From IMG/VR virus record IMGVR_UViG_3300033571_009404, positions 1 to 64,000 of that record: a stretch of 64,000 bases of DNA, one strand, 5' to 3'. Made by a program: the position numbers and the translations under genes. Numbering within the stretch: position 1 is the first letter of the stretch; every line of letters starts with the position of its first letter. Below the pieces are notes generated by a model, which was not told where the DNA came from, made no database searches, and saw only the letters and a program-made list of their open reading frames with translations. Below, piece by piece: positions 4,349 to 50,694 of this stretch.

Positions 4349-4379
4349 GTCATAAAGGCTACCGGTTTCCCGGTAGCCT
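4349..4379. terminator. Intergenic hairpin preceded by GTCATAA tag
   Basis: AGGCTACCGG-TTTC-CCGGTAGCCT (4356-4379); no U-tract on the + strand. Confidence 0.6.
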
Positions 4380-4400
4380 AAAATAAAAGGAGTAGTACCT

Positions 4401-4772
4401 ATGAAAACAGTAGCAGGAATAAATGCATTTGTTCTCAGTCAACTTTACGTGGCACTGTATAATGCTGCTTCCGTAAAGGAGAGTGAGAACTCGGTGACCA
4501 TGAAACAGTTCTTTAGTGCGAACATGGTTGAAGTGGTTATGGGCGATGTCGCATGCAACTCAGTCAAAGCATCTTTCAAACTGATCACAGATGATGATCA
4601 TCAGGCTGAGTCGATTCAAATCGTCGTCCATCATCGCGCCAATTCCGACAAGATCATTTACAGTTCACGTGATCGTATCAAGGACTACAACTACGCGAAC
4701 CACATGAAGTTCGTGATTGATCTGATGGATAACGAGTACAATCACTTAAAGGAGTGCAATACCTATGGTTAA
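4401..4772 (+). CDS. Hypothetical protein
   Basis: AAGGAG SD. Confidence 0.75.
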   Translation: MKTVAGINAFVLSQLYVALYNAASVKESENSVTMKQFFSANMVEVVMGDVACNSVKASFKLITDDDHQAESIQIVVHHRANSDKIIYSSRDRIKDYNYANHMKFVIDLMDNEYNHLKECNTYG

Positions 4773-5013
4773 AGTAATATTGCTGATAAGGCATCTCGGT
4801 CCGGATGGTCCTCCGGCCGTTACCAGTTCCATGAAGGTCGAAGACGATGTCTACAAGATCGAGAACTACATGAAGGAAGACATGGAAAAGGCACGCGATG
4901 AATTCATCAGCACTTTCCCTGAATTCCGTCGCGCCCATTGGGCTATTCAGCTGGTGGATATCCGTAACCACGGTATGTCCAGTCTCGACCACATCAAGTT
5001 GGACCCTATTTAA
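4765..5013 (+). CDS. Hypothetical protein
   Basis: AAGGAG SD, overlaps upstream stop. Confidence 0.7.
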   Translation: MVKVILLIRHLGPDGPPAVTSSMKVEDDVYKIENYMKEDMEKARDEFISTFPEFRRAHWAIQLVDIRNHGMSSLDHIKLDPI

Positions 5014-5027
5014 AGGAGGTATTACCT

Positions 5028-6311
5028 ATGCGAAACAATCATTTCATCATGGAGACCATCCATGCTAAACGTGCAGTGGATACGGTGTTTGATTCCGTAC
5101 TCCATGGACTGTTGACGGAGGGTGTCTATCATCAACGTAACACAGTTGTTGGTGTTGACTACATGCTGAAGATCATGGAGTCTCCGCCGCCCAACAGGAT
5201 GCCGATCATCCAATTCAAGAGTTCGGCTATGAGTGCTCCCTGGAAACTGGAACGCTACTACACGCTGAGTGAAGGGCTGATGGCGGCGGTCTTCGGCATC
5301 TGGTCGTGCTGCGAGTACGGCATCAGTCCGCCTGAAAACATCATGATCGGGGACATCACCAAAGATGTTCTGGACTGCATCGAACGTCTGAAAAGTACGG
5401 AGCAATCACATCGACTACGGATGTTCTCCGATTTGCCGCGCTTTGGTTATTCGGGGGATGCAGGTGGTCCTCTGCATCAGACCGCTCAGGAGACTTATGG
5501 GCGCGGCATTTCCCCGCAGTTCGGCAGAGGCAATAGCAATATGGGATACCACCACACCATGCTTCAACCTCGGATCACGCCCGTGAATTTCCGCAGTGGT
5601 ATACGTCTGGATGTGGCGGCTCATCTGGCACATCGTTGGTGTCCTGCTGCGTTTCATGGTCTATTGGATCCGACCGCTGGTATGGTCGGCTTTTGCAATC
5701 ACTGGTGGCCAGGTCCGCAGTATACGAACGACTTCATCATGACTGAGTCCATGCTGACGACGTTCGTGAATGAGCTGGAAAGGGTACATCACGTTCGTGC
5801 TGGTGTGTCTAGCAACATCGCTGAAACGGACATCGTGTTGAAGGCGGGTGTGGAGTACACTCCACTGAGTTTTGTCGAGGAGATCCTGAAACAAGGTAAT
5901 CCTGGTCATACTCGTGATGAGTACCTGACACATCTGGGTTGTCTCGGGGTCGATTTGACCAAACCGTTGACAGATACGATGATGCATCTGTTCGCCTTCG
6001 ACTACTACCTATCGCTCAAGTTCATATCCGAGCAGAACGTTGACAAGGTGAAGCTGAAGGAAGAACTCCTGGCCAAGATCCAACCCAAGTCCAAGAGCGT
6101 AACCGTCAGGGGTGGCATCTGGCTGCGTCAGTTCGGTCGTAATGCGAAGATCGCTGATATCGACTCGCTGATCACTTACTACACGGTCTTCTATCCTGGC
6201 TGGATATCGAATGGCAGTAAACCTGGCAGGAGTGATGACTTCTGGCTGGAACCCTCGCAGGTGAGCATCATGGCCGAAGACATCGGTATCCCGAAGGTGA
6301 TTGTGAAGTAA
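5028..6311 (+). CDS. Hypothetical protein with C-terminal IF2_N-like repeats
   Basis: AAGGAGG SD; ends SDDFWLEPSQVSIMAEDIGIPKVIVK. Confidence 0.65.
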   Translation: MRNNHFIMETIHAKRAVDTVFDSVLHGLLTEGVYHQRNTVVGVDYMLKIMESPPPNRMPIIQFKSSAMSAPWKLERYYTLSEGLMAAVFGIWSCCEYGISPPENIMIGDITKDVLDCIERLKSTEQSHRLRMFSDLPRFGYSGDAGGPLHQTAQETYGRGISPQFGRGNSNMGYHHTMLQPRITPVNFRSGIRLDVAAHLAHRWCPAAFHGLLDPTAGMVGFCNHWWPGPQYTNDFIMTESMLTTFVNELERVHHVRAGVSSNIAETDIVLKAGVEYTPLSFVEEILKQGNPGHTRDEYLTHLGCLGVDLTKPLTDTMMHLFAFDYYLSLKFISEQNVDKVKLKEELLAKIQPKSKSVTVRGGIWLRQFGRNAKIADIDSLITYYTVFYPGWISNGSKPGRSDDFWLEPSQVSIMAEDIGIPKVIVK

Positions 6312-6343
6312 TTAGTTACTAGCGTACATTACGTTATGTAAAT

Positions 6344-6370
6344 GCCCTCCCTTCGGGGAGGGCTTCTTTC
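6344..6370 (+). terminator. Intrinsic terminator
   Basis: GCCCTCCC-TTCG-GGGAGGGC followed by a pyrimidine/T-rich tract. Confidence 0.8.
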
Positions 6371-6403
6371 TCATCCCTTTTCTTTTTGTATTCAAACGCA
6401 ATT

Positions 6404-6425
6404 AGAACACATATTACTAAGTTGA
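6404..6425 (+). promoter_or_regulatory. Putative phage early promoter motif
   Basis: AGAACACATATTACTAAGTTGA; one of six intergenic copies; core resembles the phiKZ early motif TATATTAC. Confidence 0.65.
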
Positions 6426-6477
6426 TAATAGAACGGTCTATTGTCCTCTTTTTAACTATGTTTAAGGAAGCCCTATA

Positions 6478-7083
6478 ATGGCACTGCTCACTACCAAGAA
6501 ATACAACATCAAAGAAGTCATCTATCGTTCCAACCCGAACCTGGGTCTGCAAGAGAACATCATGATGGCCATGGACAAGAAGAAATCCGATTTGCTGTTC
6601 CCCGGTCAAGTCAAGCCCAAGCCAGTCATCAACTACGAGTTCTATCTGGACTACGATGGCTACAAAGCCAAACTGCCGGACAGCGCCAAGTGCACGATCA
6701 CCAAATCGTACATGGACACGCTCATCAACAACGCCACCAAGCAATTCGAATCCACTCGCCTGGCGTACAACAAGTTCGTCAAGGCCGATGACAAGAGCAT
6801 CGAATACTGGCATGAGTTGAAGCGTTTCGTGGTCGATGATGAAACCTATGTCAATGACATCGACGCAGCTATCGAAAATGCATGCTACCACAGTACGCGT
6901 GCATTCGCAGAAGGTCGCTACATGCCACGTCGTGTCGTCCGTACGCAGTATCTCATCATCACAACCCACAACCTGTTCGCATTCAATCCGTGGGCTGAAG
7001 GTGAAGCACTGCGCTTGCGTCGTCTGTTTGAAGAGATGCAAGAAGAACGTCTGAAGAATCTGTCCATCACTCCTTGTAAGTAA
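6478..7083 (+). CDS. Hypothetical protein
   Basis: AAGGA SD; strong codon bias. Confidence 0.8.
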   Translation: MALLTTKKYNIKEVIYRSNPNLGLQENIMMAMDKKKSDLLFPGQVKPKPVINYEFYLDYDGYKAKLPDSAKCTITKSYMDTLINNATKQFESTRLAYNKFVKADDKSIEYWHELKRFVVDDETYVNDIDAAIENACYHSTRAFAEGRYMPRRVVRTQYLIITTHNLFAFNPWAEGEALRLRRLFEEMQEERLKNLSITPCK

Positions 7084-7109
7084 GGAGCAATTAAGAGGAT
7101 ATCCCCATT

Positions 7110-8843
7110 ATGTTTTCTCATCCATTTTATTTCTTCTGGCAAAACAAGTCTCCGTTTTCCAATTGGTATATCCGGAACTTCAAAGTCAGAGAAATGATCT
7201 TCAATTGCGTTGAGCAATACATGATGTACCAGAAGGCTGTGTTCTTTGGTGATTTGGAAACTGCTAAGCTTATCATGGCAGAATCCAAACCAAAGAAGCA
7301 GAAAGAACTGGGACGTCAGGTCAAAGGCTTCAATCGCATTGATTGGGATTCTGTAGTTGAGGATATCCTCTACACGGCTATCAAGGCCAAGTTCACCCAG
7401 CATCGTGATCTGGGTGAATTGATGCTAAGCATCACTGCGAAAGAATTCGTCGAAGCATCTCCGTATGACCGGATCTATGGTGTGCGATTGTCAATGAATG
7501 ACCCTCGCATCCAGTCAAAGAAATTATGGCTCGGCCTAAACAAGCTTGGGCGTGTGCTGACCCGAGTACGTAACTGGCTGTATGTCAAGAAGAAAGGAAA
7601 GAACATGATCGATCTGTCCCCGCATCATCCAGAAGTCATTATTCTGGATTTGACAGATGTGTTTGCCGATGCACAACGGCGGCTGGCACATACGGGTGAT
7701 GTGAATCTGCTGTTGCCCTCGATGGTCAGTAGCATCATGACGTGTGTGGAATGTCGTGATCCCGATATGACCCGGTTGGAAGTCTATGTCTCTGACTTGA
7801 TCGAACAGTTCAAGAATGATGGCATGCCAACTGAGGATGGTGAAATTGCCGCAGCTATCGCTAAAGACATCGGACGTAAGCTTGTCTATGAGATCGAGAA
7901 GATCGGCGGTTACGATGAGAACGATAATTTCGATTACGATGTCTATCGTGTGGAAATCTCCGGAGCTGTGGTACTGACTCGTCTGGATCCTGTGGGCGCT
8001 CGTGCTCAAGAGAAGAGGAAAGAATGGTTTCCTGATCCGGAAGCTGTTGGTAAATCGATTTCTTCAGGTAGCAGGGTTGACCATATGGTCATGGTCGATG
8101 ACGACGGCAATCCAATCAAGACGTCTGTAGTGGATATCCCTGAACCCACTCAAGAACAGAAGGATCATATTGCTTCTTTCGAAGTTAAACTTCCTTCGCT
8201 TGAAGAAATGGAGAATCATCCGCATCAAGGATACTTCCAAGGCCAACACAATGTGCAATATGCTGCTAAGTTAGGAGAAGTAGTCACTCCTGAACAGCAG
8301 CTGCAGAACTACGAAGCACATGAGCGTCGTGTGGTTATCGAGGAGAATGTCCCGGCTGCTGGTTTCCGTAGTCGTACGGAGTACGATCTCCCCAGTGAAG
8401 ACTTTACTTCATCGACTGTTGAGTCCAATATCAGCAACAAAATCGATAAGATGCTTCATAGCCCTAAGTTCAATATGAAGTTTGCTCCTTGCGATGATCT
8501 GGGAGAAATCTCTGTCAGATTGAACGGTCAAACCATTCAGAATCCAACACCTGAACAATTGTCCGAAGTTGCCAATAAGTTGGGTTTCGATGCAGCTGAC
8601 GTCATCATGGGACAAGACAAAGGTTATCGTGAGGTTCCCTTGTCTGAAGTCAAAGAGTCTCCTTATAAAGAGATTCTCGACAATGCGTTCCAGGATCAGG
8701 AAAGGGTTATCATCAATGCAGCTCCACGCTACGTACCCCTTGGTATCGTAGACGGCGATCAACAACAACAGAAGTGGAAAGACACTACAACAGGGGAAGT
8801 GCTTACCAACGAAGAACGATTTAATCGAGTTTCAAAAGACTAA
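7110..8843 (+). CDS. NADAR (YbiA-like) domain fused to a 412-aa unknown region
   Basis: FSNWY, EQYMMYQKA, KELGRQV, AKFTQH, VEASPYDRIYG and GLNKLG motifs in aa 1-158. Confidence 0.85.
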   Translation: MFSHPFYFFWQNKSPFSNWYIRNFKVREMIFNCVEQYMMYQKAVFFGDLETAKLIMAESKPKKQKELGRQVKGFNRIDWDSVVEDILYTAIKAKFTQHRDLGELMLSITAKEFVEASPYDRIYGVRLSMNDPRIQSKKLWLGLNKLGRVLTRVRNWLYVKKKGKNMIDLSPHHPEVIILDLTDVFADAQRRLAHTGDVNLLLPSMVSSIMTCVECRDPDMTRLEVYVSDLIEQFKNDGMPTEDGEIAAAIAKDIGRKLVYEIEKIGGYDENDNFDYDVYRVEISGAVVLTRLDPVGARAQEKRKEWFPDPEAVGKSISSGSRVDHMVMVDDDGNPIKTSVVDIPEPTQEQKDHIASFEVKLPSLEEMENHPHQGYFQGQHNVQYAAKLGEVVTPEQQLQNYEAHERRVVIEENVPAAGFRSRTEYDLPSEDFTSSTVESNISNKIDKMLHSPKFNMKFAPCDDLGEISVRLNGQTIQNPTPEQLSEVANKLGFDAADVIMGQDKGYREVPLSEVKESPYKEILDNAFQDQERVIINAAPRYVPLGIVDGDQQQQKWKDTTTGEVLTNEERFNRVSKD

Positions 8844-8870
8844 TCTTCTTAATTATCTCAGGGGCGAGAT

Positions 8871-9125
8871 ATGAGCGCTGTAAATCAGGGGACTGTTGTC
8901 CATCAGCAAACTCTGTTAAATGAGGACAACACCAAAGCAGCTACTTTGACTTATCGTAATGGTTCTAACATTCCAGCGGAGTGGGAGTTATCTCAGGATG
9001 GGGATTCTGAACGTAACTTCCTTACACTGGAATTGTACCTAGCGATCAAAGGCATTGCTTTGACCAGACAGGAATGTGGTTTGACACCGGTTGATACGGT
9101 GCAAGCTTCTTTGGAATTCGAATAG
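8871..9125 (+). CDS. Hypothetical protein
   Basis: ORF in operon, AGGGG SD. Confidence 0.6.
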   Translation: MSAVNQGTVVHQQTLLNEDNTKAATLTYRNGSNIPAEWELSQDGDSERNFLTLELYLAIKGIALTRQECGLTPVDTVQASLEFE

Positions 9126-9135
9126 GAATTGTGCG

Positions 9136-9903
9136 ATGGAAAAGAGATTGAAAATGAAGAAGGCGTCCTTCATTGTCTGCGAAGGCATGGATGGATCTGG
9201 TAAGACGACAGTGTCTAAGTATCTACTGGAGTTAATGGGTTTATTTGGCTATGATGTCAAGTGGACGCGTGAACCTGGTGGTACTCCACTGGCTGAAAGT
9301 ATCCGTAACCTGATACTGACAACTGAGATGGATTCTACTACTGAACTTCTGCTGTTTAACGCAGCACGTCGTGATCATGTAGAAAACCTGATCAAGCCGT
9401 CTTTAGCAAAGGACATCACAGTGGTATCGGATCGCTTTGTGGATTCGACCATTGCTTACCAGTGCTACGCTAATCAGCGTTCACCTCTTCATCAAGTACT
9501 ATCTCTGCACCAGACTTGTATCGATTTCGATCCTGACTATGTCATTTACCTTGACATTCTCCCTGAAGTAGCAGCAGCTCGTGCAAATCAGCGTGGCGCT
9601 GGTGACCGTTTCGACAACATGCCAGCCGACTATAAGAAGCGTCTGGAGATGGGGTACCAAGTAGGGATGCTCATGCATAAAGCTAGCACCTCTACTGAAG
9701 TCGTTACCATCGATGCCAATCAAAACCTACTCGATGTATTTGAGCAAGTGTTTAATTGGTTTGTTCGCTACTACTGCGCCACGCATCAACCTGCAGCGTC
9801 ATTCGTCTTTGATAATGAAAAGCATACTAAAGCGCTCGAAAACCCTGTACTCCAGGCGGCGTTAGAACAGCATCGTCAGCACTGGCGTCTTAACTTTAGC
9901 TAA
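9136..9903 (+). CDS. tmk: Thymidylate (dTMP) kinase
   Basis: EGMDGSGKTT P-loop, TREPGGT, SDRFVDSTIAYQ; start moved to ATG 9136 after AGGA. Confidence 0.95.
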   Translation: MEKRLKMKKASFIVCEGMDGSGKTTVSKYLLELMGLFGYDVKWTREPGGTPLAESIRNLILTTEMDSTTELLLFNAARRDHVENLIKPSLAKDITVVSDRFVDSTIAYQCYANQRSPLHQVLSLHQTCIDFDPDYVIYLDILPEVAAARANQRGAGDRFDNMPADYKKRLEMGYQVGMLMHKASTSTEVVTIDANQNLLDVFEQVFNWFVRYYCATHQPAASFVFDNEKHTKALENPVLQAALEQHRQHWRLNFS

Positions 9904-10728: not shown

Positions 10729-10818
10729 TTATTGGCAAAAATTAGAGGATGCTTGTATTCTTTTGAATAGAATGCAAGTATTCCTCTAGTGCCTTTATGT
10801 CTTTCATTTAGGAAGAGT

Positions 10819-13319: not shown

Positions 13320-14183
13320 ATGCTGAAAGTTCAAGTCGATTACCACGATGATGCTTTGTTCGACAGCACAGACTTCGAGCCGAAGATCATTACTTTCCCT
13401 GGCGGGGAATGTCATGTGACTCTACCGGATGAATTGCTGGACAATCCACGTGCCCGTGCGTTTACCATTAAGACGCTGATCAAGAACGCCGACCACATCA
13501 TGCATTTGCTGATGGTTACAGACGCGATTCGTCGCCACTACGCGGGCTATCCGATTTTCCTACACATGCCGTACATTCCGTACGCACGTCAAGACCGCGT
13601 AGCCAACCACGGCGAGTCTTTGTCGGCTCGTGTGTTCTGTGATCTGATCAATGCTCAGAACTACGAAGTCGTCAGCGTCGCTGATCCGCACAGCCCGGTG
13701 GTGGAAGCGCTGCTGAACCGCATCGACGTGGTCGATCCGATTTACATGGTCGAAGAAGTGCTGCAAAGCGATCTCTTCAAGGACGGTGTGGCGCTGGTTG
13801 CACCGGACGCAGGTGCCCGAAAGCGTGTGCTGAATATGGCCATGGAAGTCAACGTCGAAGACGTGATCTTTGCTGACAAGGTACGCGATACCAAGACTGG
13901 CAAGATCACCGGTACCGTGGTCAACAACGAAGTTCCTCAAGGTAAAGCTATTCTGGTCGTGGATGACATCTGTGACGGTGGTCGTACCTTCCTGGAACTG
14001 GGTAAGGTCTTAAAGGAGAAGACCGACCAACCGCTGTACCTGTACATTACCCATGGCATCTTCAGCAAAGGTCTGGAAGAACTCGGTAAGTATTACGACC
14101 GTATCTTCACTGCCTACAACTGGAATGATGAAGAAGCCAACAATCCCCAACTGACCTTGATCAAGGAAGGAAATCTGCTGTGA
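13320..14183 (+). CDS. Ribose-phosphate pyrophosphokinase-like protein (probable ADPR-PP synthetase, Adps)
   Basis: FPGGE, PYIPYARQDR, DPHS, APDAGA and VDDICDGGRTF motifs; coupled to a Nampt-like gene. Confidence 0.9.
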   Translation: MLKVQVDYHDDALFDSTDFEPKIITFPGGECHVTLPDELLDNPRARAFTIKTLIKNADHIMHLLMVTDAIRRHYAGYPIFLHMPYIPYARQDRVANHGESLSARVFCDLINAQNYEVVSVADPHSPVVEALLNRIDVVDPIYMVEEVLQSDLFKDGVALVAPDAGARKRVLNMAMEVNVEDVIFADKVRDTKTGKITGTVVNNEVPQGKAILVVDDICDGGRTFLELGKVLKEKTDQPLYLYITHGIFSKGLEELGKYYDRIFTAYNWNDEEANNPQLTLIKEGNLL

Positions 14184-15883
14184 GCGAACAACAAGAAAAC
14201 ATCGTCGAGAAAGTTGCCAATGGTCTCGTGCCATTCAACCTGGCAGACTTCTACAAGACTGGTCACCCAGCCATGTATCCTCAGGGTACTGAAACCCTGG
14301 TGGCCAACTTTACCCCGCGCTCGGCCAAGTACGCTCCGGTACTGCCGGAATTGTTCGATAACAAGATCGTTTGGTTCGGCCTGCGTGGTTTCATCCAGGA
14401 ATGGCTGATCGATGTCTTCAATCGCGAGTTCTTCCAAAAACCCAAGGAAGAAGCCATCAAGAAGTACCGTCGTCGTATGGACACTTCTCTCGGTCCTGGT
14501 GCTGTCAGCATGAAGAAGCTGGAACTGCTCCATGATCTGGGTTACCTTCCGCTGGAAATTCGCGCCCTACCTGAAGGCGCTCGTGTGAACATCAAGGTAC
14601 CGCCGGTACTGTTCATCAACACCGCTGGCCCTGAACTGTCGTGGGTGGCTACCTACTTCGAAACTCTGATGTCCTGCGAAAGCTGGAAAATCTCGACGGT
14701 CGGTACCATTGCTTTCGAGTTCCACAAGCTGCTGACCTACTTCGCTGTGTCCACTGGCGCGCCTCTGGACTTTGTGCGTTGGCAAGGTCACGACTTCTCG
14801 TTCCGTGGCATGTCGGGTGTGCATGATGCAATGCGTACCTGCTCGGCTCACTTGCTGTCGTTCATGGGTACCGATACCATCCCGTCTATCGACTACCTGG
14901 AAGACTACTACGACGCCGATTCCGACAAGGAACTGGTGGGTGGTTCGATCCCAGCATCGGAACACAGTGTGATGGCTCTGCGCATTCTGCTGAAGCTGAA
15001 GGAACTGGCCAAGCTGCCGGAGAACGCAGGTCTGACTCACAAGCAACTACGTAAGGCAGCTGAGCTGGAAGTGGTGCGTGACTATGCCATCAAGGAATAC
15101 GACACTGGTCTGGTCTCCATGGTCTCGGATACCTTCGACTTCTGGAATGTGATCACTCACATCGCCAAGGTCCTGAAGCCTGAAATCATGCAACGCAAGC
15201 CGGATGTGTTCGGTAATGCCAAGGTCGTCTTCCGTCCTGATTCGGGTGATCCAGTGTACATCCTGACCGGTTACAAGAACAGTGAAATCGTTGCTAATGG
15301 CGATGGTACTTTCACTGTCAATGCAACTGGCAGAGTCATCCAAGATCACGAGCGTCGTGGTGCTGTGGAATGCCTGTGGGATATCTTCGGTGGTACCGAA
15401 ACCAGTCTCGGCTACAAGCTGCTGGATTCCCACGTCGGTCTGATCTACGGTGACTCGATCACTCTGCCGCGTGCTATGCGTATCCTGCGTCGTCTGCAAG
15501 ACAAGGGCTTCGCATCCACCAACGTAGTCTTCGGTATCGGTTCGTACACTTACAACATGCTCTCCCGTGACGTCTTCGGTTGGGCCATGAAGGCGGTGTA
15601 CGCGGTAGTCGATGGTGAGCCGGTTGAGATCTACAAGGATCCAGCAACTGACGACGGTATGAAGAAGTCGGCCAAGGGTCTGCTGCGTGTGGATAAGGTA
15701 GGTAACAACTACTTCCTGACGGAGAACTGCACCCCGGAAGAGTTCGAAGGCGGTGAACTCAAGCCGGTGTTCCGTAATGGTGAGATGTTGGTCAAGCCTA
15801 CCTTTAAGGAAGCCAAGGAACGTCTGCACCTTTCTTGGACGTGTCCGGAACCTAATAGCATCGTCTGGCAAGACGCTGCTTAA
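14180..15883 (+). CDS. Nicotinamide phosphoribosyltransferase-like protein (probable Namat)
   Basis: DFYKTGH, HDFSFRG, PASEHSV, VSDTFD, RPDSGDP, LIYGDSIT, KDPATD and KKSAKG motifs; GTGA overlap. Confidence 0.92.
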   Translation: MSEQQENIVEKVANGLVPFNLADFYKTGHPAMYPQGTETLVANFTPRSAKYAPVLPELFDNKIVWFGLRGFIQEWLIDVFNREFFQKPKEEAIKKYRRRMDTSLGPGAVSMKKLELLHDLGYLPLEIRALPEGARVNIKVPPVLFINTAGPELSWVATYFETLMSCESWKISTVGTIAFEFHKLLTYFAVSTGAPLDFVRWQGHDFSFRGMSGVHDAMRTCSAHLLSFMGTDTIPSIDYLEDYYDADSDKELVGGSIPASEHSVMALRILLKLKELAKLPENAGLTHKQLRKAAELEVVRDYAIKEYDTGLVSMVSDTFDFWNVITHIAKVLKPEIMQRKPDVFGNAKVVFRPDSGDPVYILTGYKNSEIVANGDGTFTVNATGRVIQDHERRGAVECLWDIFGGTETSLGYKLLDSHVGLIYGDSITLPRAMRILRRLQDKGFASTNVVFGIGSYTYNMLSRDVFGWAMKAVYAVVDGEPVEIYKDPATDDGMKKSAKGLLRVDKVGNNYFLTENCTPEEFEGGELKPVFRNGEMLVKPTFKEAKERLHLSWTCPEPNSIVWQDAA

Positions 15884-15887: not shown

Positions 15888-15925
15888 GGCATAAGGACCG
15901 GTGTGGGTAACTCCACACCGGTTTT
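15888..15925 (+). terminator. Hairpin/terminator preceded by GGCATAA tag
   Basis: ACCGGTGTGG-GTAACT-CCACACCGGT followed by TTT. Confidence 0.7.
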
Positions 15926-16543: not shown

Positions 16544-16547
16544 CCCG

Positions 16548-16579
16548 GAAGGGGAGTTTTGCGACTCCCTTTCTTTTTT
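16548..16579 (+). terminator. Intrinsic terminator
   Basis: GAAGGGGAGTT-TTGC-GACTCCCTTTC followed by T6. Confidence 0.8.
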
Positions 16580-19212: not shown

Positions 19213-19246
19213 AAAAGCGGGAGGATTCGTCCTCTCGTTTTATGCC
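19213..19246 (+). terminator. Terminator hairpin followed by TTATGCC tag
   Basis: AAAAGCGGGAGGA-TTCG-TCCTCTCGTTTT then ATGCC. Confidence 0.75.
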
Positions 19247-23820: not shown

Positions 23821-23854
23821 AGGATGGAGGGTGTAATGCCCTCCGTCTTATGAC
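23821..23854. terminator. Hairpin followed by TTATGAC tag
   Basis: AGGATGGAGGGTG-TAA-TGCCCTCCGTCTT then ATGAC. Confidence 0.65.
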
Positions 23855-24363: not shown

Positions 24364-26846
<2,483 letters not shown>

Positions 26847-29568: not shown

Positions 29569-29650
29569 GGCATAACTGACTGAGCTAGCTAGGATAGAAT
29601 CTTAATTGATTCTATCCTAGCTGCTCTTTCTCTTATGTCTTTTTTTTTTT
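29569..29650 (+). terminator. Long hairpin terminator tagged on both sides
   Basis: GGCATAA...15-bp perfect stem AGCTAGGATAGAATC/GATTCTATCCTAGCT...TTATGTC then T11. Confidence 0.8.
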
Positions 29651-35852: not shown

Positions 35853-35884
35853 GACATAAGTGGAGTGGGTGATCCCACTCCATT
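35853..35884. terminator. Hairpin preceded by GACATAA tag
   Basis: TGGAGTGGG-TGAT-CCCACTCCA; no U-tract on the + strand. Confidence 0.6.
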
Positions 35885-35898: not shown

Positions 35899-37149
35899 AT
35901 GGAAGATACTCGCGTTTTAGCACGCATCGTCCGTATCGACGATGTTTTACCTCACCCCAATGCCGACAAGATGCAACTGGGCATCGTCGGTGGTTGGCAG
36001 TGCTGCATCAAACTGGACGAATTTAAGAAGGGCGATCTGGCCTTGTACTGCGAGATCGATTCTCTCTTGCCTGTCTCGGTCCCTGAATTTGCTTTCCTGG
36101 AAGACCGTAAGGAATCCATCAAGGTAGTCAACGAAGTCGTCTACTCCCGTATCAAGACGATCCGGCTGCGTAAGGAACTGTCCCAAGGTCTGTTGGGTAA
36201 GATCCCACGTCAACTGGGTAAAGTAGTTGAAGGTCAAGACGTGACTGAAGCACTTGGCATCATCAAATACGAGAAGAAGCAAACTCGTGTCAGTGACGGT
36301 CCTGAACTGAAACCTGGTCTGATCAAACGCTTCTGCGAATGGCTGAGGAAAGACATCAAGGATGATCTGCTGCTGCCATGGCCTTACTTCATCAAGAAGA
36401 CAGAACAAGAGCGCGTTCAGAATCTGCATTCCCAGTACCTCAAAGCAGTTGAGGATGGTGAGACCTTTGAAGAATCGGTGAAGTTAAACGGTGAATCGTT
36501 TACTGCCTTCTTCGTATTCAAAGATGGTGTCCATGGTCACGCTGGTGTTTGCTCACGCAACTATGAGATCCAGACTACTGATGTAGTTTGGACCTGGAAG
36601 CAATCCTTCCGTTATTGGCTGTCTCGCTTCGTGGGTGGTAACTCTCGTATTCTGCGGACCCGGCACTTTGTCTGGCCTGATTGGCGTACTGGCGTCAAAG
36701 CCGATGATGATCCATTCGTACGCCACTGGAAACGTTTGGATCTGGCTAAGAAGCTGGAAGACTACCAGTACAAGTCAGGTGTACAGATTGCCATTCAGGG
36801 TGAGTTAGCTGGTCCTGGACATCAGAGCAATAAGGAAGGTCTGGAGACTGCTGACGTCTACGTGTATCAAGTATACGTGATCGATTCTGACTTCGGTATG
36901 AAGATGGGTCTGCTATTACCAGAAGACGCACGTCGGGTGACAGAGGAACTTGGTCTGAAGTACGTTCCTGTTCCTGAGAAGAACGCTAAGCTACCACCTA
37001 CCATCAAGGAAGCCTTGCTGCGTGCGGATGGTCCGGCTTATTTCGATAAGAGCCGCAGTCGTGAAGGTCTGGTCTACAAGAGCAATACCCGTGACTTCTC
37101 GTTCAAGGTGATTAGTAACAAGTTCTTGGAAAAGAACGAGGACGAATAA
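35899..37149 (+). CDS. ATP-dependent RNA ligase, DRB0094/Rnl2-like family
   Basis: HPNADK..GGWQC, YCEIDS, LRKELSQGL, KLNG motif I, CSRN, QGE, EGLVYK, FKVISNKF. Confidence 0.9.
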   Translation: MEDTRVLARIVRIDDVLPHPNADKMQLGIVGGWQCCIKLDEFKKGDLALYCEIDSLLPVSVPEFAFLEDRKESIKVVNEVVYSRIKTIRLRKELSQGLLGKIPRQLGKVVEGQDVTEALGIIKYEKKQTRVSDGPELKPGLIKRFCEWLRKDIKDDLLLPWPYFIKKTEQERVQNLHSQYLKAVEDGETFEESVKLNGESFTAFFVFKDGVHGHAGVCSRNYEIQTTDVVWTWKQSFRYWLSRFVGGNSRILRTRHFVWPDWRTGVKADDDPFVRHWKRLDLAKKLEDYQYKSGVQIAIQGELAGPGHQSNKEGLETADVYVYQVYVIDSDFGMKMGLLLPEDARRVTEELGLKYVPVPEKNAKLPPTIKEALLRADGPAYFDKSRSREGLVYKSNTRDFSFKVISNKFLEKNEDE

Positions 37150-39927: not shown

Positions 39928-39959
39928 GGGAGAGGGCTTAGGCTCTCTCCCTTTATGCC
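39928..39959 (+). terminator. Hairpin followed by TTTATGCC tag
   Basis: GGGAGAGGGC-TTAG-GCTCTCTCCC-TTTATGCC. Confidence 0.75.
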
Positions 39960-44640: not shown

Positions 44641-44677
44641 ATAAATAGGGAGAGGGCAACTTCTCCCTATTTATGCC
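44641..44677 (+). terminator. GNRA hairpin ending in TTATGCC tag
   Basis: ATAAATAGGGAGAGG-GCAA-CTTCTCCCTATTTAT then GCC. Confidence 0.75.
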
Positions 44678-45127: not shown

Positions 45128-45559
45128 ATGCTGAAAGTTCAAATCATCTATCCGGCTTATAATCAGAGTTTAGATCAGCCGGGTATGTGGGAGTTGTTAA
45201 GGCATATGTGGAGTGAAACACCTGGTGGTTTGATGGTCAGGGGCGCATACATCACTAACATTCCTAACGATCCTTCCACAGGAGTTGATCCCATCTACTT
45301 CTTTGGACGTCGTCCAGATTCACCAGAGGTCTGGCATGGCGATGTTGCACATGCTCAACTGTTTAGCAACATCCAAGACCTGATCAGTGAACTAGAGAAG
45401 ATGCGTCAAGAGTCTTCTCGTGGGAACGATGATGGTCAGTACTTTAACCATGAGCATCGTAGTCAGTTGGGTTACAGGGTATCGGTTTATCCGGTTTACT
45501 GGAATCCGCTTTATACGCCCCATTTTGAAATGGTAAGGGATAAACAACACTATGGCTAA
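45128..45559 (+). CDS. Hypothetical protein (family with 47021, 48772)
   Basis: YFFG...P..W......LF...VSVYPVY. Confidence 0.75.
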   Translation: MLKVQIIYPAYNQSLDQPGMWELLRHMWSETPGGLMVRGAYITNIPNDPSTGVDPIYFFGRRPDSPEVWHGDVAHAQLFSNIQDLISELEKMRQESSRGNDDGQYFNHEHRSQLGYRVSVYPVYWNPLYTPHFEMVRDKQHYG

Positions 45560-45950
45560 GACGCTCCTTGAATTGGTCAAAGGCACGATTGAACGCGGCA
45601 TCGCGTGCCCTTATGATGATGAACCCGTTGCACCGCATGACCTTGGTCGTATTGCAGCAGTGTCAGTCATTGCTGATCTGACCGATCGTCGAGGCATCAA
45701 GAATGGTTTCAATGACATTGATGACGATGTCCGTAAATCTATCGTTGATGATCTGACCAACATCATCAACGCCGTTCACTCTCCTGAATTCAAGTTCGAA
45801 GACTTTACTGGATTTCGTGATCAACTGATCGAATCGGAGAAGAGATTTGAAGCATTGACCGAAGAGGAGTTGAAAGAACTTGCAGAATATGTCGAGCGAC
45901 GTGATCGAGAGTTCTACGCTTCATTAAACAGAGTTAACCAAATATTTTAG
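45552..45950 (+). CDS. Hypothetical protein
   Basis: AAGGGA SD; ADLTDRRGIK module. Confidence 0.75.
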   Translation: MAKTLLELVKGTIERGIACPYDDEPVAPHDLGRIAAVSVIADLTDRRGIKNGFNDIDDDVRKSIVDDLTNIINAVHSPEFKFEDFTGFRDQLIESEKRFEALTEEELKELAEYVERRDREFYASLNRVNQIF

Positions 45951-45956
45951 GACGAC

Positions 45957-47021
45957 GTGATGAATGTTGACAAAAGACAATATATCGATCACGACACATT
46001 AGATATTGAAGAACGTGTCATTGTCGCAGTTAATTATCTCCCCAAGGATATTGATCCCCGGTTTGAAGGTCTGGGGATTGAAAACTATTCAAGCAAGTAC
46101 AACGAGTATTTTTGCTGGGGTAGGCACTATCAAACTAAGGTTGATAAGGAACTTCAGGAATTAGGCATTCCGGGTAATAAATACGGTTTCGTCCCCAAGA
46201 AGATACCGCGAATCATCCAATGCTTGGAGTATTACGGTGTGCCGCGTTTTAAAGAAGAATTAACGAACGATGACGTAGATGCATTGATGAAACACATAGC
46301 GTATCAGTGGAACTTCAATGGATTCGAAGAACATATGTGTAGTTCAGCAGAAAGAGCTTTTTCTGATGATCTGGAATCTCGTGACGAATATGTCTATAAT
46401 AAACTGTCGCAGATGGTTTATGAAGATTACATCACGACCATCGAAGCAGGTTATCTTGAGGCTAAAAGTTTGCAACTAGGGATGGAGTATTCCATATTCC
46501 CTTTCTACAAACATCGTAAATGGTTGTTTCCATGGGCTGCTGATTTATTGACCGACTTTCGTTTGAATGGGTTCCCCAGCTGGTATATTGGATCAGTGCT
46601 CAGTTACTACCGTAAACCAATCAGTGAAGACGAGAAATATCATTACCGTCCAGTTTATACTGCATTTTTATTTGGTGATATCGAACGTAAGTACGAAAAG
46701 CTATTAGTAGATATCGCTAAGTACCATGGTATTGATGAATATATTGCCAAAGTCCGCTACATCGATCAAAACGAGACTCTGACATACCACCGTCATCATA
46801 CCAGGCTGAAGTTGGAGAAACTGAGGAAAGAGTCAAGACAGGCAGATGAGGAATTGAAAGACCTCTTGCAAAAATGCACTAATGCCACCGAGGTTTCAGT
46901 TCAAAGTAAACCTAATAACGACGACATCACGATGAAAGAGTTTTTGCTCGATACCGTGATGTTCTGGCGTAGTCTACTCAAATTAGCGAAACGCTATTTC
47001 GCTAAGAATAAGGAGAAATAA
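45957..47021 (+). CDS. Hypothetical protein
   Basis: Long AT-rich ORF. Confidence 0.75.
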   Translation: MMNVDKRQYIDHDTLDIEERVIVAVNYLPKDIDPRFEGLGIENYSSKYNEYFCWGRHYQTKVDKELQELGIPGNKYGFVPKKIPRIIQCLEYYGVPRFKEELTNDDVDALMKHIAYQWNFNGFEEHMCSSAERAFSDDLESRDEYVYNKLSQMVYEDYITTIEAGYLEAKSLQLGMEYSIFPFYKHRKWLFPWAADLLTDFRLNGFPSWYIGSVLSYYRKPISEDEKYHYRPVYTAFLFGDIERKYEKLLVDIAKYHGIDEYIAKVRYIDQNETLTYHRHHTRLKLEKLRKESRQADEELKDLLQKCTNATEVSVQSKPNNDDITMKEFLLDTVMFWRSLLKLAKRYFAKNKEK

Positions 47022-47818
47022 TGCATTTAGGTAAACTGACGTTAAGTGAACTCCAAAAGATCGTCCACGCATTGTTCAACGAGGACAAACCTGAATCACC
47101 GATGAAGATCGTCGGTGCGTACATCGTGGCTGATTTCGTTGATCCGGAACTGGGTCGTCGTTACTATGGTTATCATGACCATCGACCACGTGAGTTGTGG
47201 TTCGAACAGAAGAGTTTGGCTCACCTCTACATCGCTGACGATTGTGCAGTGGATATCGCTCATGCATTGGTCGGTATTCTGAATGAGATGGAAGAGGTCA
47301 TCAATGTCACGGGTGGTGCTGATCCCGATAAGGAATATCAGGTCTTCTCTTACTGGAATATCAACCGTCTGAAGACACTCAAGGGTGTGACTATCAGTCT
47401 TTTGCCAGTGTACGAACTGAAGGAAGAAGGAGAAGACCTACGCGCGATTAAGGTTGTTCCTCGTATCAGGACAATCGGTGAGCTGAGGGATGAGATGTTG
47501 AAAGTCGCGCGCGGAGATACCCCAATTCCATCCAGTGCGTCACATCCATCTGTAGAACCAAACGCATCGATGAATTACCGCACGTTGGCTAAGGTTCATG
47601 CTGAAGCGAGCGCCGTCGACGCACATGCCGTACAAGGCGAAAACGTTACTGCGATTATGGACATATTGAAAGATCCTCATTTGGTTCATGTCAATATGTT
47701 GGCTGGTAAAATAGCCAAGATCGGCATGCGTGAATTAGCACACGTGCATGGTGATGAGATGTCAGCCCGCTGGCGTGCTTTCGAAGAATGGGAAGCTTCC
47801 CAAAAGGAAGGTAAATGA
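47021..47818 (+). CDS. Mosaic hypothetical protein (family with 45128, 48772)
   Basis: AAGGAG SD; RYYG...P..LW...ISLLPVYEL. Confidence 0.75.
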   Translation: MHLGKLTLSELQKIVHALFNEDKPESPMKIVGAYIVADFVDPELGRRYYGYHDHRPRELWFEQKSLAHLYIADDCAVDIAHALVGILNEMEEVINVTGGADPDKEYQVFSYWNINRLKTLKGVTISLLPVYELKEEGEDLRAIKVVPRIRTIGELRDEMLKVARGDTPIPSSASHPSVEPNASMNYRTLAKVHAEASAVDAHAVQGENVTAIMDILKDPHLVHVNMLAGKIAKIGMRELAHVHGDEMSARWRAFEEWEASQKEGK

Positions 47819-48012
47819 CCCCATATCTCATCAATCGTGCTGATGGCGTTAAAGGCCACTTCGTCATCGCTCGTAATACTTCTCGTGGTGGCTTGGAGTT
47901 TTGGAGCAAGAAGAATAAATGCTGGTGTGGCTGCGCTGACTTTAAACCCCTGGGTAAAAAGAAAGCAAAGAAGCTCTTGGCTAAAATCATTAAAAAGGAG
48001 TCCAATGAATAA
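47815..48012 (+). CDS. Small basic protein
   Basis: ATGA overlap. Confidence 0.65.
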   Translation: MTPYLINRADGVKGHFVIARNTSRGGLEFWSKKNKCWCGCADFKPLGKKKAKKLLAKIIKKESNE

Positions 48013-48190
48013 ACGTTGTACCTGTGGTCGCATGCGTTATTGCGATACAGTTGTGACTTGCCCTCGCGCTGGTATTAATCAAATGGGCGATGCACGTAAG
48101 CGTCAGCAGATGGGTGGTTTTATTGTCCCACTGCATAAGCAACCTGATCGTCCACGTAACAAACATCAACAGGAGCAGCCATATGGCTAA
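48005..48190 (+). CDS. Small Cys-rich protein
   Basis: AAGGAG SD; MNKRCTCG...C.....C. Confidence 0.6.
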   Translation: MNKRCTCGRMRYCDTVVTCPRAGINQMGDARKRQQMGGFIVPLHKQPDRPRNKHQQEQPYG

Positions 48191-48365
48191 GGGTAAGTAT
48201 AAGTCACCTCCGAAGTATCCCGAATTGCAAGGGGATGTACTGAAGAACAAAGCAAAAGACTTTATGCTGACCGTGCCACCCACTGCTGTGGGTGGTAACT
48301 TCGATCAAAAGAGAAACATCGCCTACTTTGGTAAAGAGGCTATCGATAAGAAAGAACCCCAATGA
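48183..48365 (+). CDS. Small hypothetical protein
   Basis: AGGAG SD before ATG 48183. Confidence 0.6.
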   Translation: MAKGKYKSPPKYPELQGDVLKNKAKDFMLTVPPTAVGGNFDQKRNIAYFGKEAIDKKEPQ

Positions 48366-48763
48366 TTCCATTCCTGCAAGACCCCGCTCATATCTGGCAC
48401 GTTGCCATTCTCCTGGTGTTTGCGCATTGTTTGGCAGACTATCCCCTGCAAGGTGATTTCATGGCTCAAGCCAAGAATCGTAACCATCCAGTATTCAACG
48501 CCCATGGGGACCCCAAGAAACCCGTTTACTGGAAATGGGTATTGCCGTCCCATGGGTTGATCCATGCCGGGTTCGTATACCTGATCACAGGGATGTGGGT
48601 GCTGTTCTTGGCTGAGTTCGTCATGCACACCGTGATTGACTTCTTCAAGTGCGATGAGAAGATTTCGTATAACACCGATCAAGCCCTGCATCTGTTTTGC
48701 AAGGTTGCATGGCTGATTGTGTTTTATTCAGAAATCACTTTCAAAATCTATCTGGCTAAATAG
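48362..48763 (+). CDS. DUF3307 family membrane protein
   Basis: H..ADYPLQ, H..IH, H..ID..K and DQ.LH motifs; several TM helices. Confidence 0.85.
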   Translation: MIPFLQDPAHIWHVAILLVFAHCLADYPLQGDFMAQAKNRNHPVFNAHGDPKKPVYWKWVLPSHGLIHAGFVYLITGMWVLFLAEFVMHTVIDFFKCDEKISYNTDQALHLFCKVAWLIVFYSEITFKIYLAK

Positions 48764-48771
48764 GAGATATA

Positions 48772-49188
48772 ATGCCAACTGGACTGAACCTCGATTCGAT
48801 CTACCAAGCATCGAAGAAGGCAATCGAAGTACCCATCCATACCGATGACCTGCTGGGTTTCGATCTGATCGTCGCTGAATCTCTGATTAAACTCTCGTTC
48901 ATCGACGGTCATTCGTACTACTACGGTGAACCCGATGGTCGACCGCACCAGCCACGTACTCACTGGTATCACGATCAAACCGATCCCAATGTGTTCCGTT
49001 ATACCGACGCCAAGTCGTTAGCTGAGGCGCTGGAATCTCTGCGCAAGATCATCGACGGTGAATCTGAAGGCGATATCTTCTCCATCGTACCTGAAGGTAT
49101 CCCTGCTCTGGTGTCGGTGGTGCACCTCTATCGTCTTTCCCCTGAAACATCGCCAGTCGTGGTGATGAAGTACGACAGAGAAATTTAA
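48772..49188 (+). CDS. Hypothetical protein (family with 45128, 47021)
   Basis: AGGAG SD; YYYG...P..HW...VSVVHLYRL. Confidence 0.75.
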   Translation: MPTGLNLDSIYQASKKAIEVPIHTDDLLGFDLIVAESLIKLSFIDGHSYYYGEPDGRPHQPRTHWYHDQTDPNVFRYTDAKSLAEALESLRKIIDGESEGDIFSIVPEGIPALVSVVHLYRLSPETSPVVVMKYDREI

Positions 49189-49197
49189 GGAGTCGTA

Positions 49198-49623
49198 ATG
49201 ACAAACCGTATGATCGCAGCGTCGTATGGTCAGCAAAGACCGCTCGACCTGAAGTTTGAACTATCACGCGTCTCATGCGTGAAGATCGAGAAAGAAGTCT
49301 TCCACCTTGACCAGTTCAAGAATGGTACATGGCGTTTGACCTACACCGATTCTCTGATTCCTCACATCGATCGTTTCAACAGGTTGATTATCAACCAAGT
49401 CGAGAAGAAGATTGAAGTCTGGCAAAAGGATATCGAGGGTACGTCTGGCAAGATCCGAGAACTTTCCCTGAAGTCGATCATCAAGACTGGCAGCGAAGTC
49501 GGCATGCTCCATATCGAACCAGATGCTCGGGGTAACTACCGTATCTTGGTCTCGCCCGGTCTGATCAATGACTTTAAGTTGTTCGATGGTCTGCTCATGT
49601 TGCGTGAGGTCGTCAAGACTTAA
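49198..49623 (+). CDS. Hypothetical protein with internal tandem duplication
   Basis: FHLDQFKNGTWRLTYTDSLI vs LHIEPDARGNYRILVSPGLI. Confidence 0.75.
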   Translation: MTNRMIAASYGQQRPLDLKFELSRVSCVKIEKEVFHLDQFKNGTWRLTYTDSLIPHIDRFNRLIINQVEKKIEVWQKDIEGTSGKIRELSLKSIIKTGSEVGMLHIEPDARGNYRILVSPGLINDFKLFDGLLMLREVVKT

Positions 49624-49644
49624 ATTACAGGAGTCGATTAAGGT

Positions 49645-49995
49645 ATGAGTATCTTCAAGTGGCAGCGTGGACGTCAGGACACAGGCTATGACAAGGTGCT
49701 TCTTCTGACGGGTAAATGGCCATTAGGCTTTGATTGTTATTTGATCAAGTATCCTGAAGGATCGTCTATTCCACCCCATAAAGACCCAGTGGCTACTGGG
49801 CGGCATTACAGACTCAATATCATCCTCTGGAAGTCTCCAGAAGGTGGTGAGTTCGTATGTGACAATCCCATCCTCAGTTTACCGAGGATCAAACTCTTCC
49901 GACCAGATCAATCTGAACATAGCGTAACCACTGTTAAAGGTGGATCACGTTACATCTTATCGATCGGTTGGATATTCAAAAAGGAACCGCAGTGA
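49645..49995 (+). CDS. 2OG-Fe(II) oxygenase
   Basis: PPHKD...GGEF...HSVT...RY (HxD...H...R). Confidence 0.85.
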   Translation: MSIFKWQRGRQDTGYDKVLLLTGKWPLGFDCYLIKYPEGSSIPPHKDPVATGRHYRLNIILWKSPEGGEFVCDNPILSLPRIKLFRPDQSEHSVTTVKGGSRYILSIGWIFKKEPQ

Positions 49996-50651
49996 GCGAT
50001 CAACAACCCCAAGCACAAAACGAACAACAAGGTTACACCGACGAGCAAGTCGAGACCATGAACCTGCTGGAGCAATTCAAGATCCCAGCTGGTACTTCCT
50101 CCGATGTACTGACCAAAGCCATCCCCCTGCTGGAAGTTGCAGCTGGTGCTGTGAAAGCCGCCATCGAGCACATGGAAGAACAACGTAACTTCATGGGTGC
50201 TGACTGGAAGGCACTGCCGGTGGCTGAAGACACGCTGAACAAGTGGGTCCAAGAACACACTGCACGCATCGAGTTCATTGCACACCTCCAATACATGCTC
50301 GAAGCCTGCAAGAAGTGGGAAGAACAACTCGATGAAGGTCACCTGGAACAAATGCGTCTGGTCGTTGACCTGGACAAGGCCATCAGCGAAATCGCCAGCC
50401 TGAATGCCGACATTGACAAACTCAATGCGAAGTTCCCGCAGATGTTTGTCAATGCAGAAGAATCTCCACTGATCCAGCGTCGTACCGAACTGGTTGGCGA
50501 GATCTCTGACAAGCTGCGTTTCCTGGTGCGGCCGTCTCTGCCTGCTTATTACCTGCACAATCAGAACGGCAATCAACCGCGTCACTTCGGTGAACCGGTC
50601 TGGGGCGTGGAAGACATCGTTGCCAACTTCAAGGTTGCTGCACCTACCTAA
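49992..50651 (+). CDS. Helical hypothetical protein
   Basis: GTG start after AAGGA. Confidence 0.8.
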   Translation: MSDQQPQAQNEQQGYTDEQVETMNLLEQFKIPAGTSSDVLTKAIPLLEVAAGAVKAAIEHMEEQRNFMGADWKALPVAEDTLNKWVQEHTARIEFIAHLQYMLEACKKWEEQLDEGHLEQMRLVVDLDKAISEIASLNADIDKLNAKFPQMFVNAEESPLIQRRTELVGEISDKLRFLVRPSLPAYYLHNQNGNQPRHFGEPVWGVEDIVANFKVAAPT

Positions 50652-50658
50652 ACCGTAA

Positions 50659-50694
50659 GGCATAAAGAGGAGGGGAATTCCCCTCCTCTATGAC
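50659..50694. terminator. Hairpin flanked by GGCATAA and TATGAC
   Basis: AGAGGAGGGG-AATT-CCCCTCCTCT; no U-tract. Confidence 0.65.

Follow-up and report, generated by a model that had tools for sequence, protein, structure and literature searches.

Tagged hairpins at gene ends of an uncultured phiKZ-like jumbo phage probably act as phiKZ-type transcription terminators

The DNA analysed here, hereafter the window, comprises the first 64,000 nucleotides of IMG/VR record IMGVR_UViG_3300033571_009404, and its intergenic regions carry stem-loops that adjoin a seven-nucleotide tag, TTATGHC, or its reverse complement GDCATAA. The whole record spans 310,114 bp, has a GC content of 47.9% and carries direct terminal repeats. 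Its PHROG matches include the split beta/beta' subunits of multisubunit RNA polymerase (RNAP), phiKZ-type structural proteins and a large terminase, and a homologue of the phiKZ RNAP subunit GP123 is located at 115147-116739. The closest deposited relative in tblastn searches is Burkholderia phage FLC9, with 46% amino acid identity in the beta-like subunit of the non-virion RNAP (nvRNAP); the Ralstonia RP12/RP31 group and the Pseudomonas phiKZ group (Chimalliviridae-type) come next. With a nearest relative at this distance and split RNAPs of its own, the source is, judged from its proteins, an uncharacterised phiKZ-like jumbo phage. A gene caller based on codon usage and trained on the long open reading frames of this genome placed 341 genes on the + strand and 35 on the - strand. 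All 171 genes of the first 102 kb are on +, in agreement with the first-pass annotation, which had described every gene of the window as + strand.

That annotation had also reported ten tags next to hairpins with unrelated stems. All ten are present (GTCATAA at 4349; GGCATAA at 15888, 29569 and 50659; GACATAA at 35853; TTATGCC at 19240, 39953 and 44671; TTATGAC at 23848; TTATGTC at 29633), each adjoining an intergenic stem-loop, and no stem resembles another. One further tagged copy, at 10795 after a long hairpin, was absent from it. The tagged hairpins of the window are listed below, with the RNAfold free energy (dG) and the distance between stem and tag (gap) where these were obtained.

4349..4379, - strand: putative minus-facing terminator hairpin; tag GTCATAA 4349-4355 (minus strand reads CTTTATGACGTTAC), hairpin 4356-4379 with 10-bp stem and TTTC loop, dG -19.8, gap 1; lies between two + strand genes; no U-tract on the + strand
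10742..10801, + strand: sense-facing copy; long hairpin followed by TTTATGTC, tag 10795-10801; folded stem extends to TGCC, 2 nt before TATG
15888..15922, - strand: minus-facing copy; tag GGCATAA 15888-15894, hairpin 15897-15922, dG -18.7, gap 3; + strand flank TTTTCAAC, with a short T run
19215..19246, + strand: sense-facing copy; TTCG-loop hairpin followed by TTTTATGCCCTTAA, dG -14.2
23822..23854, + strand: sense-facing copy; hairpin followed by TCTTATGAC, dG -18.3; NAD-dependent DNA ligase gene 14 nt downstream
29569..29650, both faces: atypical two-sided copy; GGCATAA 29569-29575, 6-nt spacer, stem-loop 29582-29626 (20/19-nt, AT-richer), 6-nt spacer, TTATGTC 29633-29639
35853..35884, - strand: minus-facing copy; tag GACATAA 35853-35859 (minus strand ACTTATGTCGTTAT), dG -15.8
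39928..39959, + strand: sense-facing copy; hairpin followed by CTTTATGCC, dG -18.0
44644..44677, + strand: sense-facing copy; hairpin followed by ATTTATGCC, dG -18.0
50659..50694, both faces: two-sided copy between co-directional genes; GGCATAA, 10-bp stem with AATT loop, CTATGAC; dG -19.7 and -18.1

The copies at 29569 and 50659 are indeed two-sided, as had been described, except that the right-hand tag at 50659 is CTATGAC and not TTATGAC. Likewise, the lack of a coding-strand U-tract noted for several copies holds at 4349, 35853 and 50659 but not at 15888, where TTTT is found. The 29569 copy is a probable genuine element, with a spacing beyond the 6-nt limit of the catalogue described below; a run of 11 T (29640-29650) lies directly 3' of it. 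At 4349, the stop codon TAA of the upstream + strand gene is 1 nt off and falls within the extended motif defined below, and the 35853 element begins 1 nt past the stop of the upstream gene and 14-16 nt ahead of the RNA ligase gene.

The heptamer itself is not enriched in the window, which holds 21 TTATGHC matches against 23.9 expected. Eleven of the 21 directly adjoin intergenic GC-rich stem-loops, and the other ten, mostly coding, are background (986, 25607, 35817, 52795, 55799, 58472, 58619, 58679, 60570 and 60622). The signal is the adjacency of the tag to hairpins and not the frequency of the 7-mer. A genome-wide scan that assumed no motif and covered the 14 nt immediately 3' of each perfect stem that was >= 8 bp long, with both strands counted, returned TTATG as the top-enriched 5-mer, observed 36 times against 1.24 expected. 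We then defined hairpins by RNAfold as structures ending <= 6 nt from the motif, with 11 permutations of the core as controls. Under this definition, TATGNC followed a hairpin of dG <= -14 in 73 of 434 cases (17%), compared to 175 of 7382 (2.4%) for the permuted cores (odds ratio 8.3, p = 1e-34), and a hairpin of dG <= -18 in 48 of 434 cases, compared to 35 of 7382. An initial threshold of dG <= -9 gave a 15% background, which was too lax, and was replaced by -14 to -18. These results show that the tag occurs next to hairpins clearly more often than by chance, the point on which the first-pass annotation had made its own reading depend.

Alignment of 59 half-elements on TATG (position weight matrix) gave the order stem, 0-6 nt mostly T, TATG, [A/C], C, [C/G], T, [T/C], A, with T at position -2 in 37 and at -1 in 41 of the half-elements, then TAT, then G-M-C. 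The extended form TATG[AC]C[CG]T[CT]A has 33 copies in the genome, of which 29 are intergenic and 23 fall within the first hairpin catalogue; several more come after imperfect hairpins. Stems are 7-14 bp long, with loops mostly of 4 nt and unrelated sequences. Many loci are two-sided, as the inverted repeat GNCATA...TATGNC, and these form near-perfect palindromes spanning 36-41 bp, with one of 50. The earlier premise that an intrinsic terminator needs a U-tract rather than such a tag was too sharp, since a brief U-rich stretch (T-T-TAT) already forms the start of the tag. Reverse-complemented, the final three bases of the consensus read TAA or TGA, and where a tag lies on the upstream side, the preceding gene usually has its stop codon 1-4 nt away, inside the extended motif. 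The conserved distal bases are not merely a stop codon, because they are conserved also where no gene reads through them.

The position of the elements relative to genes was determined from a controlled catalogue of 58 loci and 73 half-elements with a stem-to-tag gap of <= 6 nt. Eight loci are intragenic, near the ~10 false positives expected, and 50 are intergenic. Elements occupied 17 of 19 convergent junctions (12 two-sided, 5 with a single tag), whereas none of the 19 divergent junctions carried one (Fisher p = 1.2e-8). Between co-directional genes, 23 elements were sense-facing only, 8 antisense-facing only and 2 two-sided, which represents a significant bias towards the sense orientation (23 vs 8, p = 0.011). 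Most co-directional elements begin 1-17 nt past the upstream stop, and sense-facing tags are found 14-138 nt ahead of the next start codon. The elements are thus found at transcript ends and never at starts, which argues for a terminator and not a promoter.

A closely similar element is known from relatives. ONT-cappable-seq (ONT, Oxford Nanopore Technologies) of phiKZ mapped 133 termination regions, 6 of them bidirectional between convergent genes, and 61 mapped terminators shared the motif BCCYCCCCHWWDGGGRRGGBYTTATKYYGT (Putzeys et al. 2024, Microlife, PMC10914365). For phage 201phi2-1, the corresponding study reports 132 transcription termination sites (TTS), 15 of them bidirectional, a motif A (n = 59) that 'strongly resembles' the phiKZ motif, and a motif B that co-occurs with motif A and makes the hairpin longer (PMC11512511). 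We scanned 50-kb samples of comparison phages with the same motif-free method. At positions 3' of hairpins, TTATG-type 5-mers rank first in phiKZ (15 vs 0.93 expected) and in 201phi2-1 (10 vs 0.35 expected, 28-fold), and CTATG ranks first in FLC9 (6 vs 0.11 expected). The tag was not found in the SPN3US sample, which has ordinary T-tracts instead, nor in the AR9 sample, which has almost no GC-rich hairpins; its distribution among the phages compared is therefore phiKZ, 201phi2-1, FLC9 and the present phage. Across phages, elements come after homologues of the same late genes (major head protein, gp129 and gp130). After the major head protein gene, the phiKZ and 201phi2-1 stems differ by paired changes and have the flank TTTATGTTGT in common; the present phage has an unrelated longer stem at this place, followed by TTTATGCCGTCA (113709-113753). 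The variable bases of the tag track genome GC, with G-Y-Y in phiKZ and G-[A/C]-C in the present phage and FLC9.

The present elements resemble the phiKZ motif in having Y-TTAT-G/T-N-N-G/S-T directly after a GC-rich stem-loop that ends in a tetraloop, and in lying intergenically after genes, two-sided between convergent genes, in a jumbo phage that encodes multisubunit RNAPs of its own. They differ in the distal segment, G-[A/C]-C-[C/G]-T-[T/C]-A here compared to G/T-Y-Y-G-T, in a genome of 48% GC compared to 37-38%. Their stems are also far more varied than the CCCTCCC/GGGAGGG-type of phiKZ, and it is the phiKZ sites that are mapped on RNA. The elongated A/B hairpin of 201phi2-1 probably corresponds to our two-sided form; that motif B equals a 5' tag is our interpretation of its description.

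To relate the tag to RNA ends, we combined the phiKZ Table S4 (bioRxiv version) with the phiKZ sequence and classified by eye 85 TTS (T034-T118), leaving out T001-T033 and T119-T133; all phiKZ TTS statements below refer to this part of the table. At tagged faces, the distances from the stem to the 3' end are 8, 7, 5, 8 and 6 nt, which places the ends within -1 to +2 nt of the G in TATG; at four of the five, GT follows immediately. At untagged faces the ends lie 5, 3, 5, 3 and 4 nt past the stem, a comparison of small numbers made at an ONT resolution of a few nucleotides. With the transcript's direction as reference, ~14 of the 85 TTS have a tag on each side of the hairpin, ~10 have it 3' only and ~10 have it 5' only. 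Three of the sites, T037, T058 and T083, lie ~25-30 nt upstream of a tagged hairpin within long A-runs (AAATAAAAAAAAAATAAAGACAT...) and may be artefacts of ONT poly(A)-tailing. At T102 (223931), a strong premature terminator in the 5' untranslated region of PHIKZ221, the sequence is CTTATGTTGT without a GC-rich hairpin and with only CATATAC...GTATATG pairing, possibly a case of the tag working with minimal structure.

Taken together, these data suggest that a phiKZ-like jumbo phage with split RNAPs of its own uses the elements as phiKZ-type intrinsic transcription terminators, a reading to which we give a probability of roughly 0.82. A terminator specific to the phage RNAP was among the possibilities raised in the first-pass annotation, and it is the one favoured by the match to the mapped phiKZ and 201phi2-1 architecture and by the split between convergent and divergent junctions. 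Three features that characterize the phiKZ-type terminator were found: a stem-loop followed by Y-TTAT-K-N-N-S-T, location at gene 3' ends, two-sided if convergent, and a genome encoding phiKZ-like virion and non-virion multisubunit RNAPs. In the functional unit, a GC-rich stem-loop whose sequence is arbitrary would be followed by a short run rich in U and by the conserved distal segment, together T-T-TATG-[A/C]-C-[C/G]-T-[T/C]-A past the stem. The hairpin would form in the nascent RNA, the weak UUAU hybrid would allow it to invade, and the polymerase would release within a few nucleotides of G. Tags on both sides would make a bidirectional terminator, as between convergent genes, and a one-sided tag would mark the direction of full termination. 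Antisense-only copies would be full terminators for antisense transcripts, with the sense 3' end due either to a weaker stop or to trimming as far as the hairpin. Multisubunit RNAPs recognize an elemental pause signal with Y at -1 and G at +1, and a 3' end on the pyrimidine before G (before S in this phage) resembles it by analogy.

Several points weigh against this reading. Termination in this phage is something we infer from homology and context. Tag polarity is weaker in the relatives, where the 50-kb samples of phiKZ and 201phi2-1 contain 5 sense-only and 7 antisense-only co-directional elements, and the classified phiKZ sites have a 3'-only tag no more often than a 5'-only one. A hairpin alone can give a 3' end, because T054 and T063 have neither a tag nor a U-tract downstream. 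In addition, ONT 3' ends have a resolution of a few nucleotides and cannot distinguish termination from exonuclease trimming.

The proposed terminators share with canonical bacterial ones a GC-rich hairpin, a weak U/A-rich tract right 3' of it and release 5-8 nt past the stem, and the A-rich 5' arm of the two-sided form mirrors the 3' arm as in bidirectional bacterial terminators. They are unlike them in that the U-tract of the tag is only ~4-5 nt long and interrupted (UUUAU), compared to an uninterrupted run of typically at least 4-8 U in canonical ones, and in that they have a conserved G/C-containing segment beyond the likely release point, which canonical terminators lack. T7 RNAP class II signals are comparable, since there too a phage RNAP responds to more than a U-tract, namely to DNA sequence conserved where it stops; those signals are hairpin-independent and act on a single-subunit RNAP, whereas every element here has its hairpin and the RNAPs are multisubunit.

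A number of copies carry only a tag that faces away from the coding strand. In the window these are 4349, 15888 and 35853, together with the left side of 29569, and genome-wide 8 antisense-only loci lie between co-directional genes. Their tags fit the extended consensus equally well as sense-facing ones (position +6 is S in 7/8 vs 17/21, and position +7 is T in 5/8 vs 12/21). Antisense-facing copies also recur in the 50-kb samples of FLC9 (L095:27492), phiKZ (L096:15946, 37159 and 42923) and 201phi2-1 (L097:20017, 24692, 26556 and 37774), and because of this recurrence they appear to be a conserved habit of the clade and not an accident of one genome. Among the phiKZ sites, the sense 3' ends T054 and T063 map to hairpins with an antisense-facing tag and neither tag nor U-tract downstream, and at T052, T062, T067, T074, T088, T097, T107 and T112 sense 3' ends map to hairpins with a U-rich sense flank and an antisense-facing tag. 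Antisense-tagged hairpins are therefore not idle on the coding strand in phiKZ, and the tag is not strictly needed for a 3' end. No antisense 3' end is listed at T054 or T063 among T034-T118, where antisense RNA may be too rare to call. A role of antisense-facing tags in stopping antisense transcription is a plausible proposal.

It is also possible, although we consider it on the unlikely side, that antisense-facing tags have no antisense function, being relics of copied or inverted cassettes, or an A-rich 5' arm that lengthens the hairpin, so that the coding-strand hairpin acts alone. Copying in either orientation does occur, as whole 38-40-nt two-sided cassettes are exactly duplicated in inverted orientation with unrelated flanks (129292-129330/142758-142796 and 194436-472/256147-183), which suggests that terminator cassettes are copied or converted between sites. 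The sense 3' ends at the ten phiKZ hairpins named above, all with a 5' tag only, and the hairpin-lengthening motif B of 201phi2-1 (PMC11512511) would fit this explanation as well. However, antisense-only tags are as consensus-like as sense-facing ones, a lone 5' tag without a 3' partner cannot lengthen a stem, and neutral relics would not be expected to recur in four phages whose RNAP subunits have < 50% amino acid identity. A different proposal, raised in the first-pass annotation as a hairpin+TATG promoter, is that the hairpin-proximal TATG is an nvRNAP late promoter starting at G, either in terminator-promoter cassettes or as outward promoters. In phiKZ, late promoters have TATG as their core, with G as +1; this core is required but does not suffice, and downstream sequence matters too (PMC4666361). 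The elements have the same four bases in the same register, and in phiKZ 3' ends map around the G that is +1 of the promoter (PMC4666361; PMC12809450). The spacing of sense-facing tags ahead of the next start codon could suit a promoter too, and in the phiKZ tables terminator T064 is followed, 10 nt on, by late promoter P075. But P075 uses a separate TATG at that distance, and the table of phiKZ transcription start sites (TSS) has, for 114-146 kb, no start at any tag adjoining a hairpin. P119L, the model late promoter (TATG-TAGACAG), shares TATG only, without the extended tag. Although the late-promoter core is present, the elements are at gene ends, not upstream of transcription units nor at any divergent junction; at the convergent junctions, which they do occupy, promoters would fire antisense into both genes. 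Promoter-like positions are instead held by a different motif, AGAtaCATATCACTA, twice just 3' of a tagged hairpin. We therefore consider the promoter proposal very improbable.

More improbable still is an element that acts at the DNA level, as a cruciform, as a protein-binding inverted repeat GNCATA...TATGNC, or as a REP/IS200-like hairpin serving a Y1 transposase. The near-perfect palindromes formed by two-sided copies, the duplication of cassettes and the presence of a gene for an SbcC-like subunit of a palindrome nuclease would be in line with it. On the other hand, more than half of the loci are one-sided, the stems are unrelated, the gap between stem and tag ranges over 0-6 nt, orientation goes with gene direction (23 vs 8), the loci keep to the 3' ends of genes, and the homologous phiKZ elements have RNA 3' ends mapped to them in the portion of the table we used. 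A whole-genome search for Y1 transposase (PF01797), in which positive controls worked, found none, and hairpins of the REP/BIME (repetitive extragenic palindrome/bacterial interspersed mosaic element) or IS200/IS605 type were ruled out by this result and by the unrelated stems. The cruciform or protein-binding site that the first-pass annotation had offered as an alternative is disfavoured by the unrelated stems, the one-sided copies, the orientation and the RNA 3' ends in relatives. Hairpin promoters of the N4 virion RNAP have a 5-7-bp stem, a 3-nt loop and conserved stem and loop bases, and lie upstream of early genes. This type was ruled out as well, the elements described here having 8-14-bp stems, mostly 4-nt loops, no conserved stem bases and a location at gene ends.

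If the elements are terminators, the presence of the promoter word in the tag invites a mechanistic proposal. In the 2026 structure of the phiKZ nvRNAP on P119L, a pocket of GP123, and not the sigma-like subunit, recognizes TATG (-3 to +1) on the non-template strand; GP123 is a beta-like core subunit, and its TATG pocket is incomplete in the transcribing complex (PMC12809450). Because a core pocket travels with the elongating enzyme, a GP123-type pocket could re-engage TATG during elongation and hold the enzyme at ...UAU-G past the hairpin, so that one word would serve both starts and stops. Since a 4-base promoter fires promiscuously on both strands, antisense tagged hairpins between co-directional genes could then be dedicated insulators against antisense transcription. 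We regard this idea as speculative and give it a low probability. Pocket residues F151, K190, H331, S334 and Q466 are kept in the present phage, with aromatic swaps at 185 and 406, and the pocket of the tag-less SPN3US differs at 185, 186, 190 and 334, both comparisons being made at ~30% identity where the alignment is uncertain. That conservation is partial in the present phage and less in SPN3US is at most a hint, to which we give little weight.

Two terminator flavours coexist in this genome, the tagged one (hairpin + TTATG...) and a hairpin followed by a plain T-tract. In the part of the phiKZ table classified here, the T-tract flavour reads TTTATTTT and predominates in the + strand block past ~196 kb (T087-T118). 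Each flavour might belong to its own RNAP, virion or non-virion, or the two might represent temporal classes. The second intergenic motif, approximately TCAAA-N(8-12)-AGAtaCATATCACTA, has about 17 intergenic copies, all on the + strand and 20-150 nt upstream of genes, with two copies directly downstream of a tagged hairpin or terminator. It is probably a phage promoter class, perhaps early or middle, and has no match among the phiKZ early, middle or late motifs given in the papers examined. The untagged hairpins and copies of this motif are as follows.

6343..6363, + strand: untagged comparison hairpin; T-rich 3' flank TTCTTTCTC; ~45 nt later a variant of the CATATCACTA promoter-like motif
16547..16574, + strand: untagged hairpin resembling a canonical intrinsic terminator; TTTTTTG directly 3'
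55708..55731, + strand: untagged comparison hairpin; TTTTGATC 3', then the promoter-like motif at 55769
17483, 42850, 55769 and a variant near 6407-6421, + strand: TCAAA-N(8-12)-AGAtaCATATCACTA motif in the window
68447, 74186, 90400, 94434, 113803, 155822, 197363, 219831, 297203 and 305132, + strand: examples of the same motif beyond the window

Other features of the genome were recorded along with these. PHROG matches identify 14180-15883, 24373-26406 and 35899-37149 as nicotinamide phosphoribosyltransferase (NAMPT), NAD-dependent DNA ligase and RNA ligase, which places NAD+ salvage and repair functions in the + strand block of the window. The SbcC-like subunit of a palindrome-specific endonuclease is encoded at 137728-140292, despite dozens of near-perfect 36-41-bp palindromes in the same genome (the two-sided putative terminators). 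Further exact cassette recurrences are found at different convergent junctions, one at 218206-218235 with the 129292 set, and others at 158732-769, 266562-600 and 292068-106. Megablast of 8 kb against deposited phages gave no match, and IMG/VR matches to NAMPT were unrelated phages that have this auxiliary gene in common. Among queries for close relatives, the RNA ligase had no matches and the nvRNAP subunit retrieved a single contig at 46% identity. A search of RNA runs found none that contained this phage. Over 98501-104400, contigs of run X6 are near-identical fragments with 4 single-nucleotide differences, none inside elements.

The element is, by its sequence and context, the phiKZ-type terminator described in 2024 in two relatives, and it is new here in a divergent, uncultured phage. 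Our results go slightly beyond the literature examined in the extended consensus, the clean convergent/divergent split, the clade distribution, the recurrence of antisense tags in four phages and the coincidence of 3' ends with the promoter word TATG. A literature search found no biochemical study of termination by non-canonical jumbo-phage RNAPs, and the conserved bases past the U-rich run, the coincidence with the TATG start word and the antisense-facing copies provide concrete templates for in vitro termination assays. A stable hairpin followed by T-T-TATG-M-C-S-T would be a cheap and specific marker of transcription-unit ends for the annotation of phiKZ-like jumbo phages, useful for uncultured phages such as this one, which RNA-seq cannot reach for want of a host, and it sets this clade apart from SPN3US-like phages with plain T-tract terminators. 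For the engineering of jumbo phages, terminators that function with phage RNAPs within the phage nucleus would be useful parts as well.

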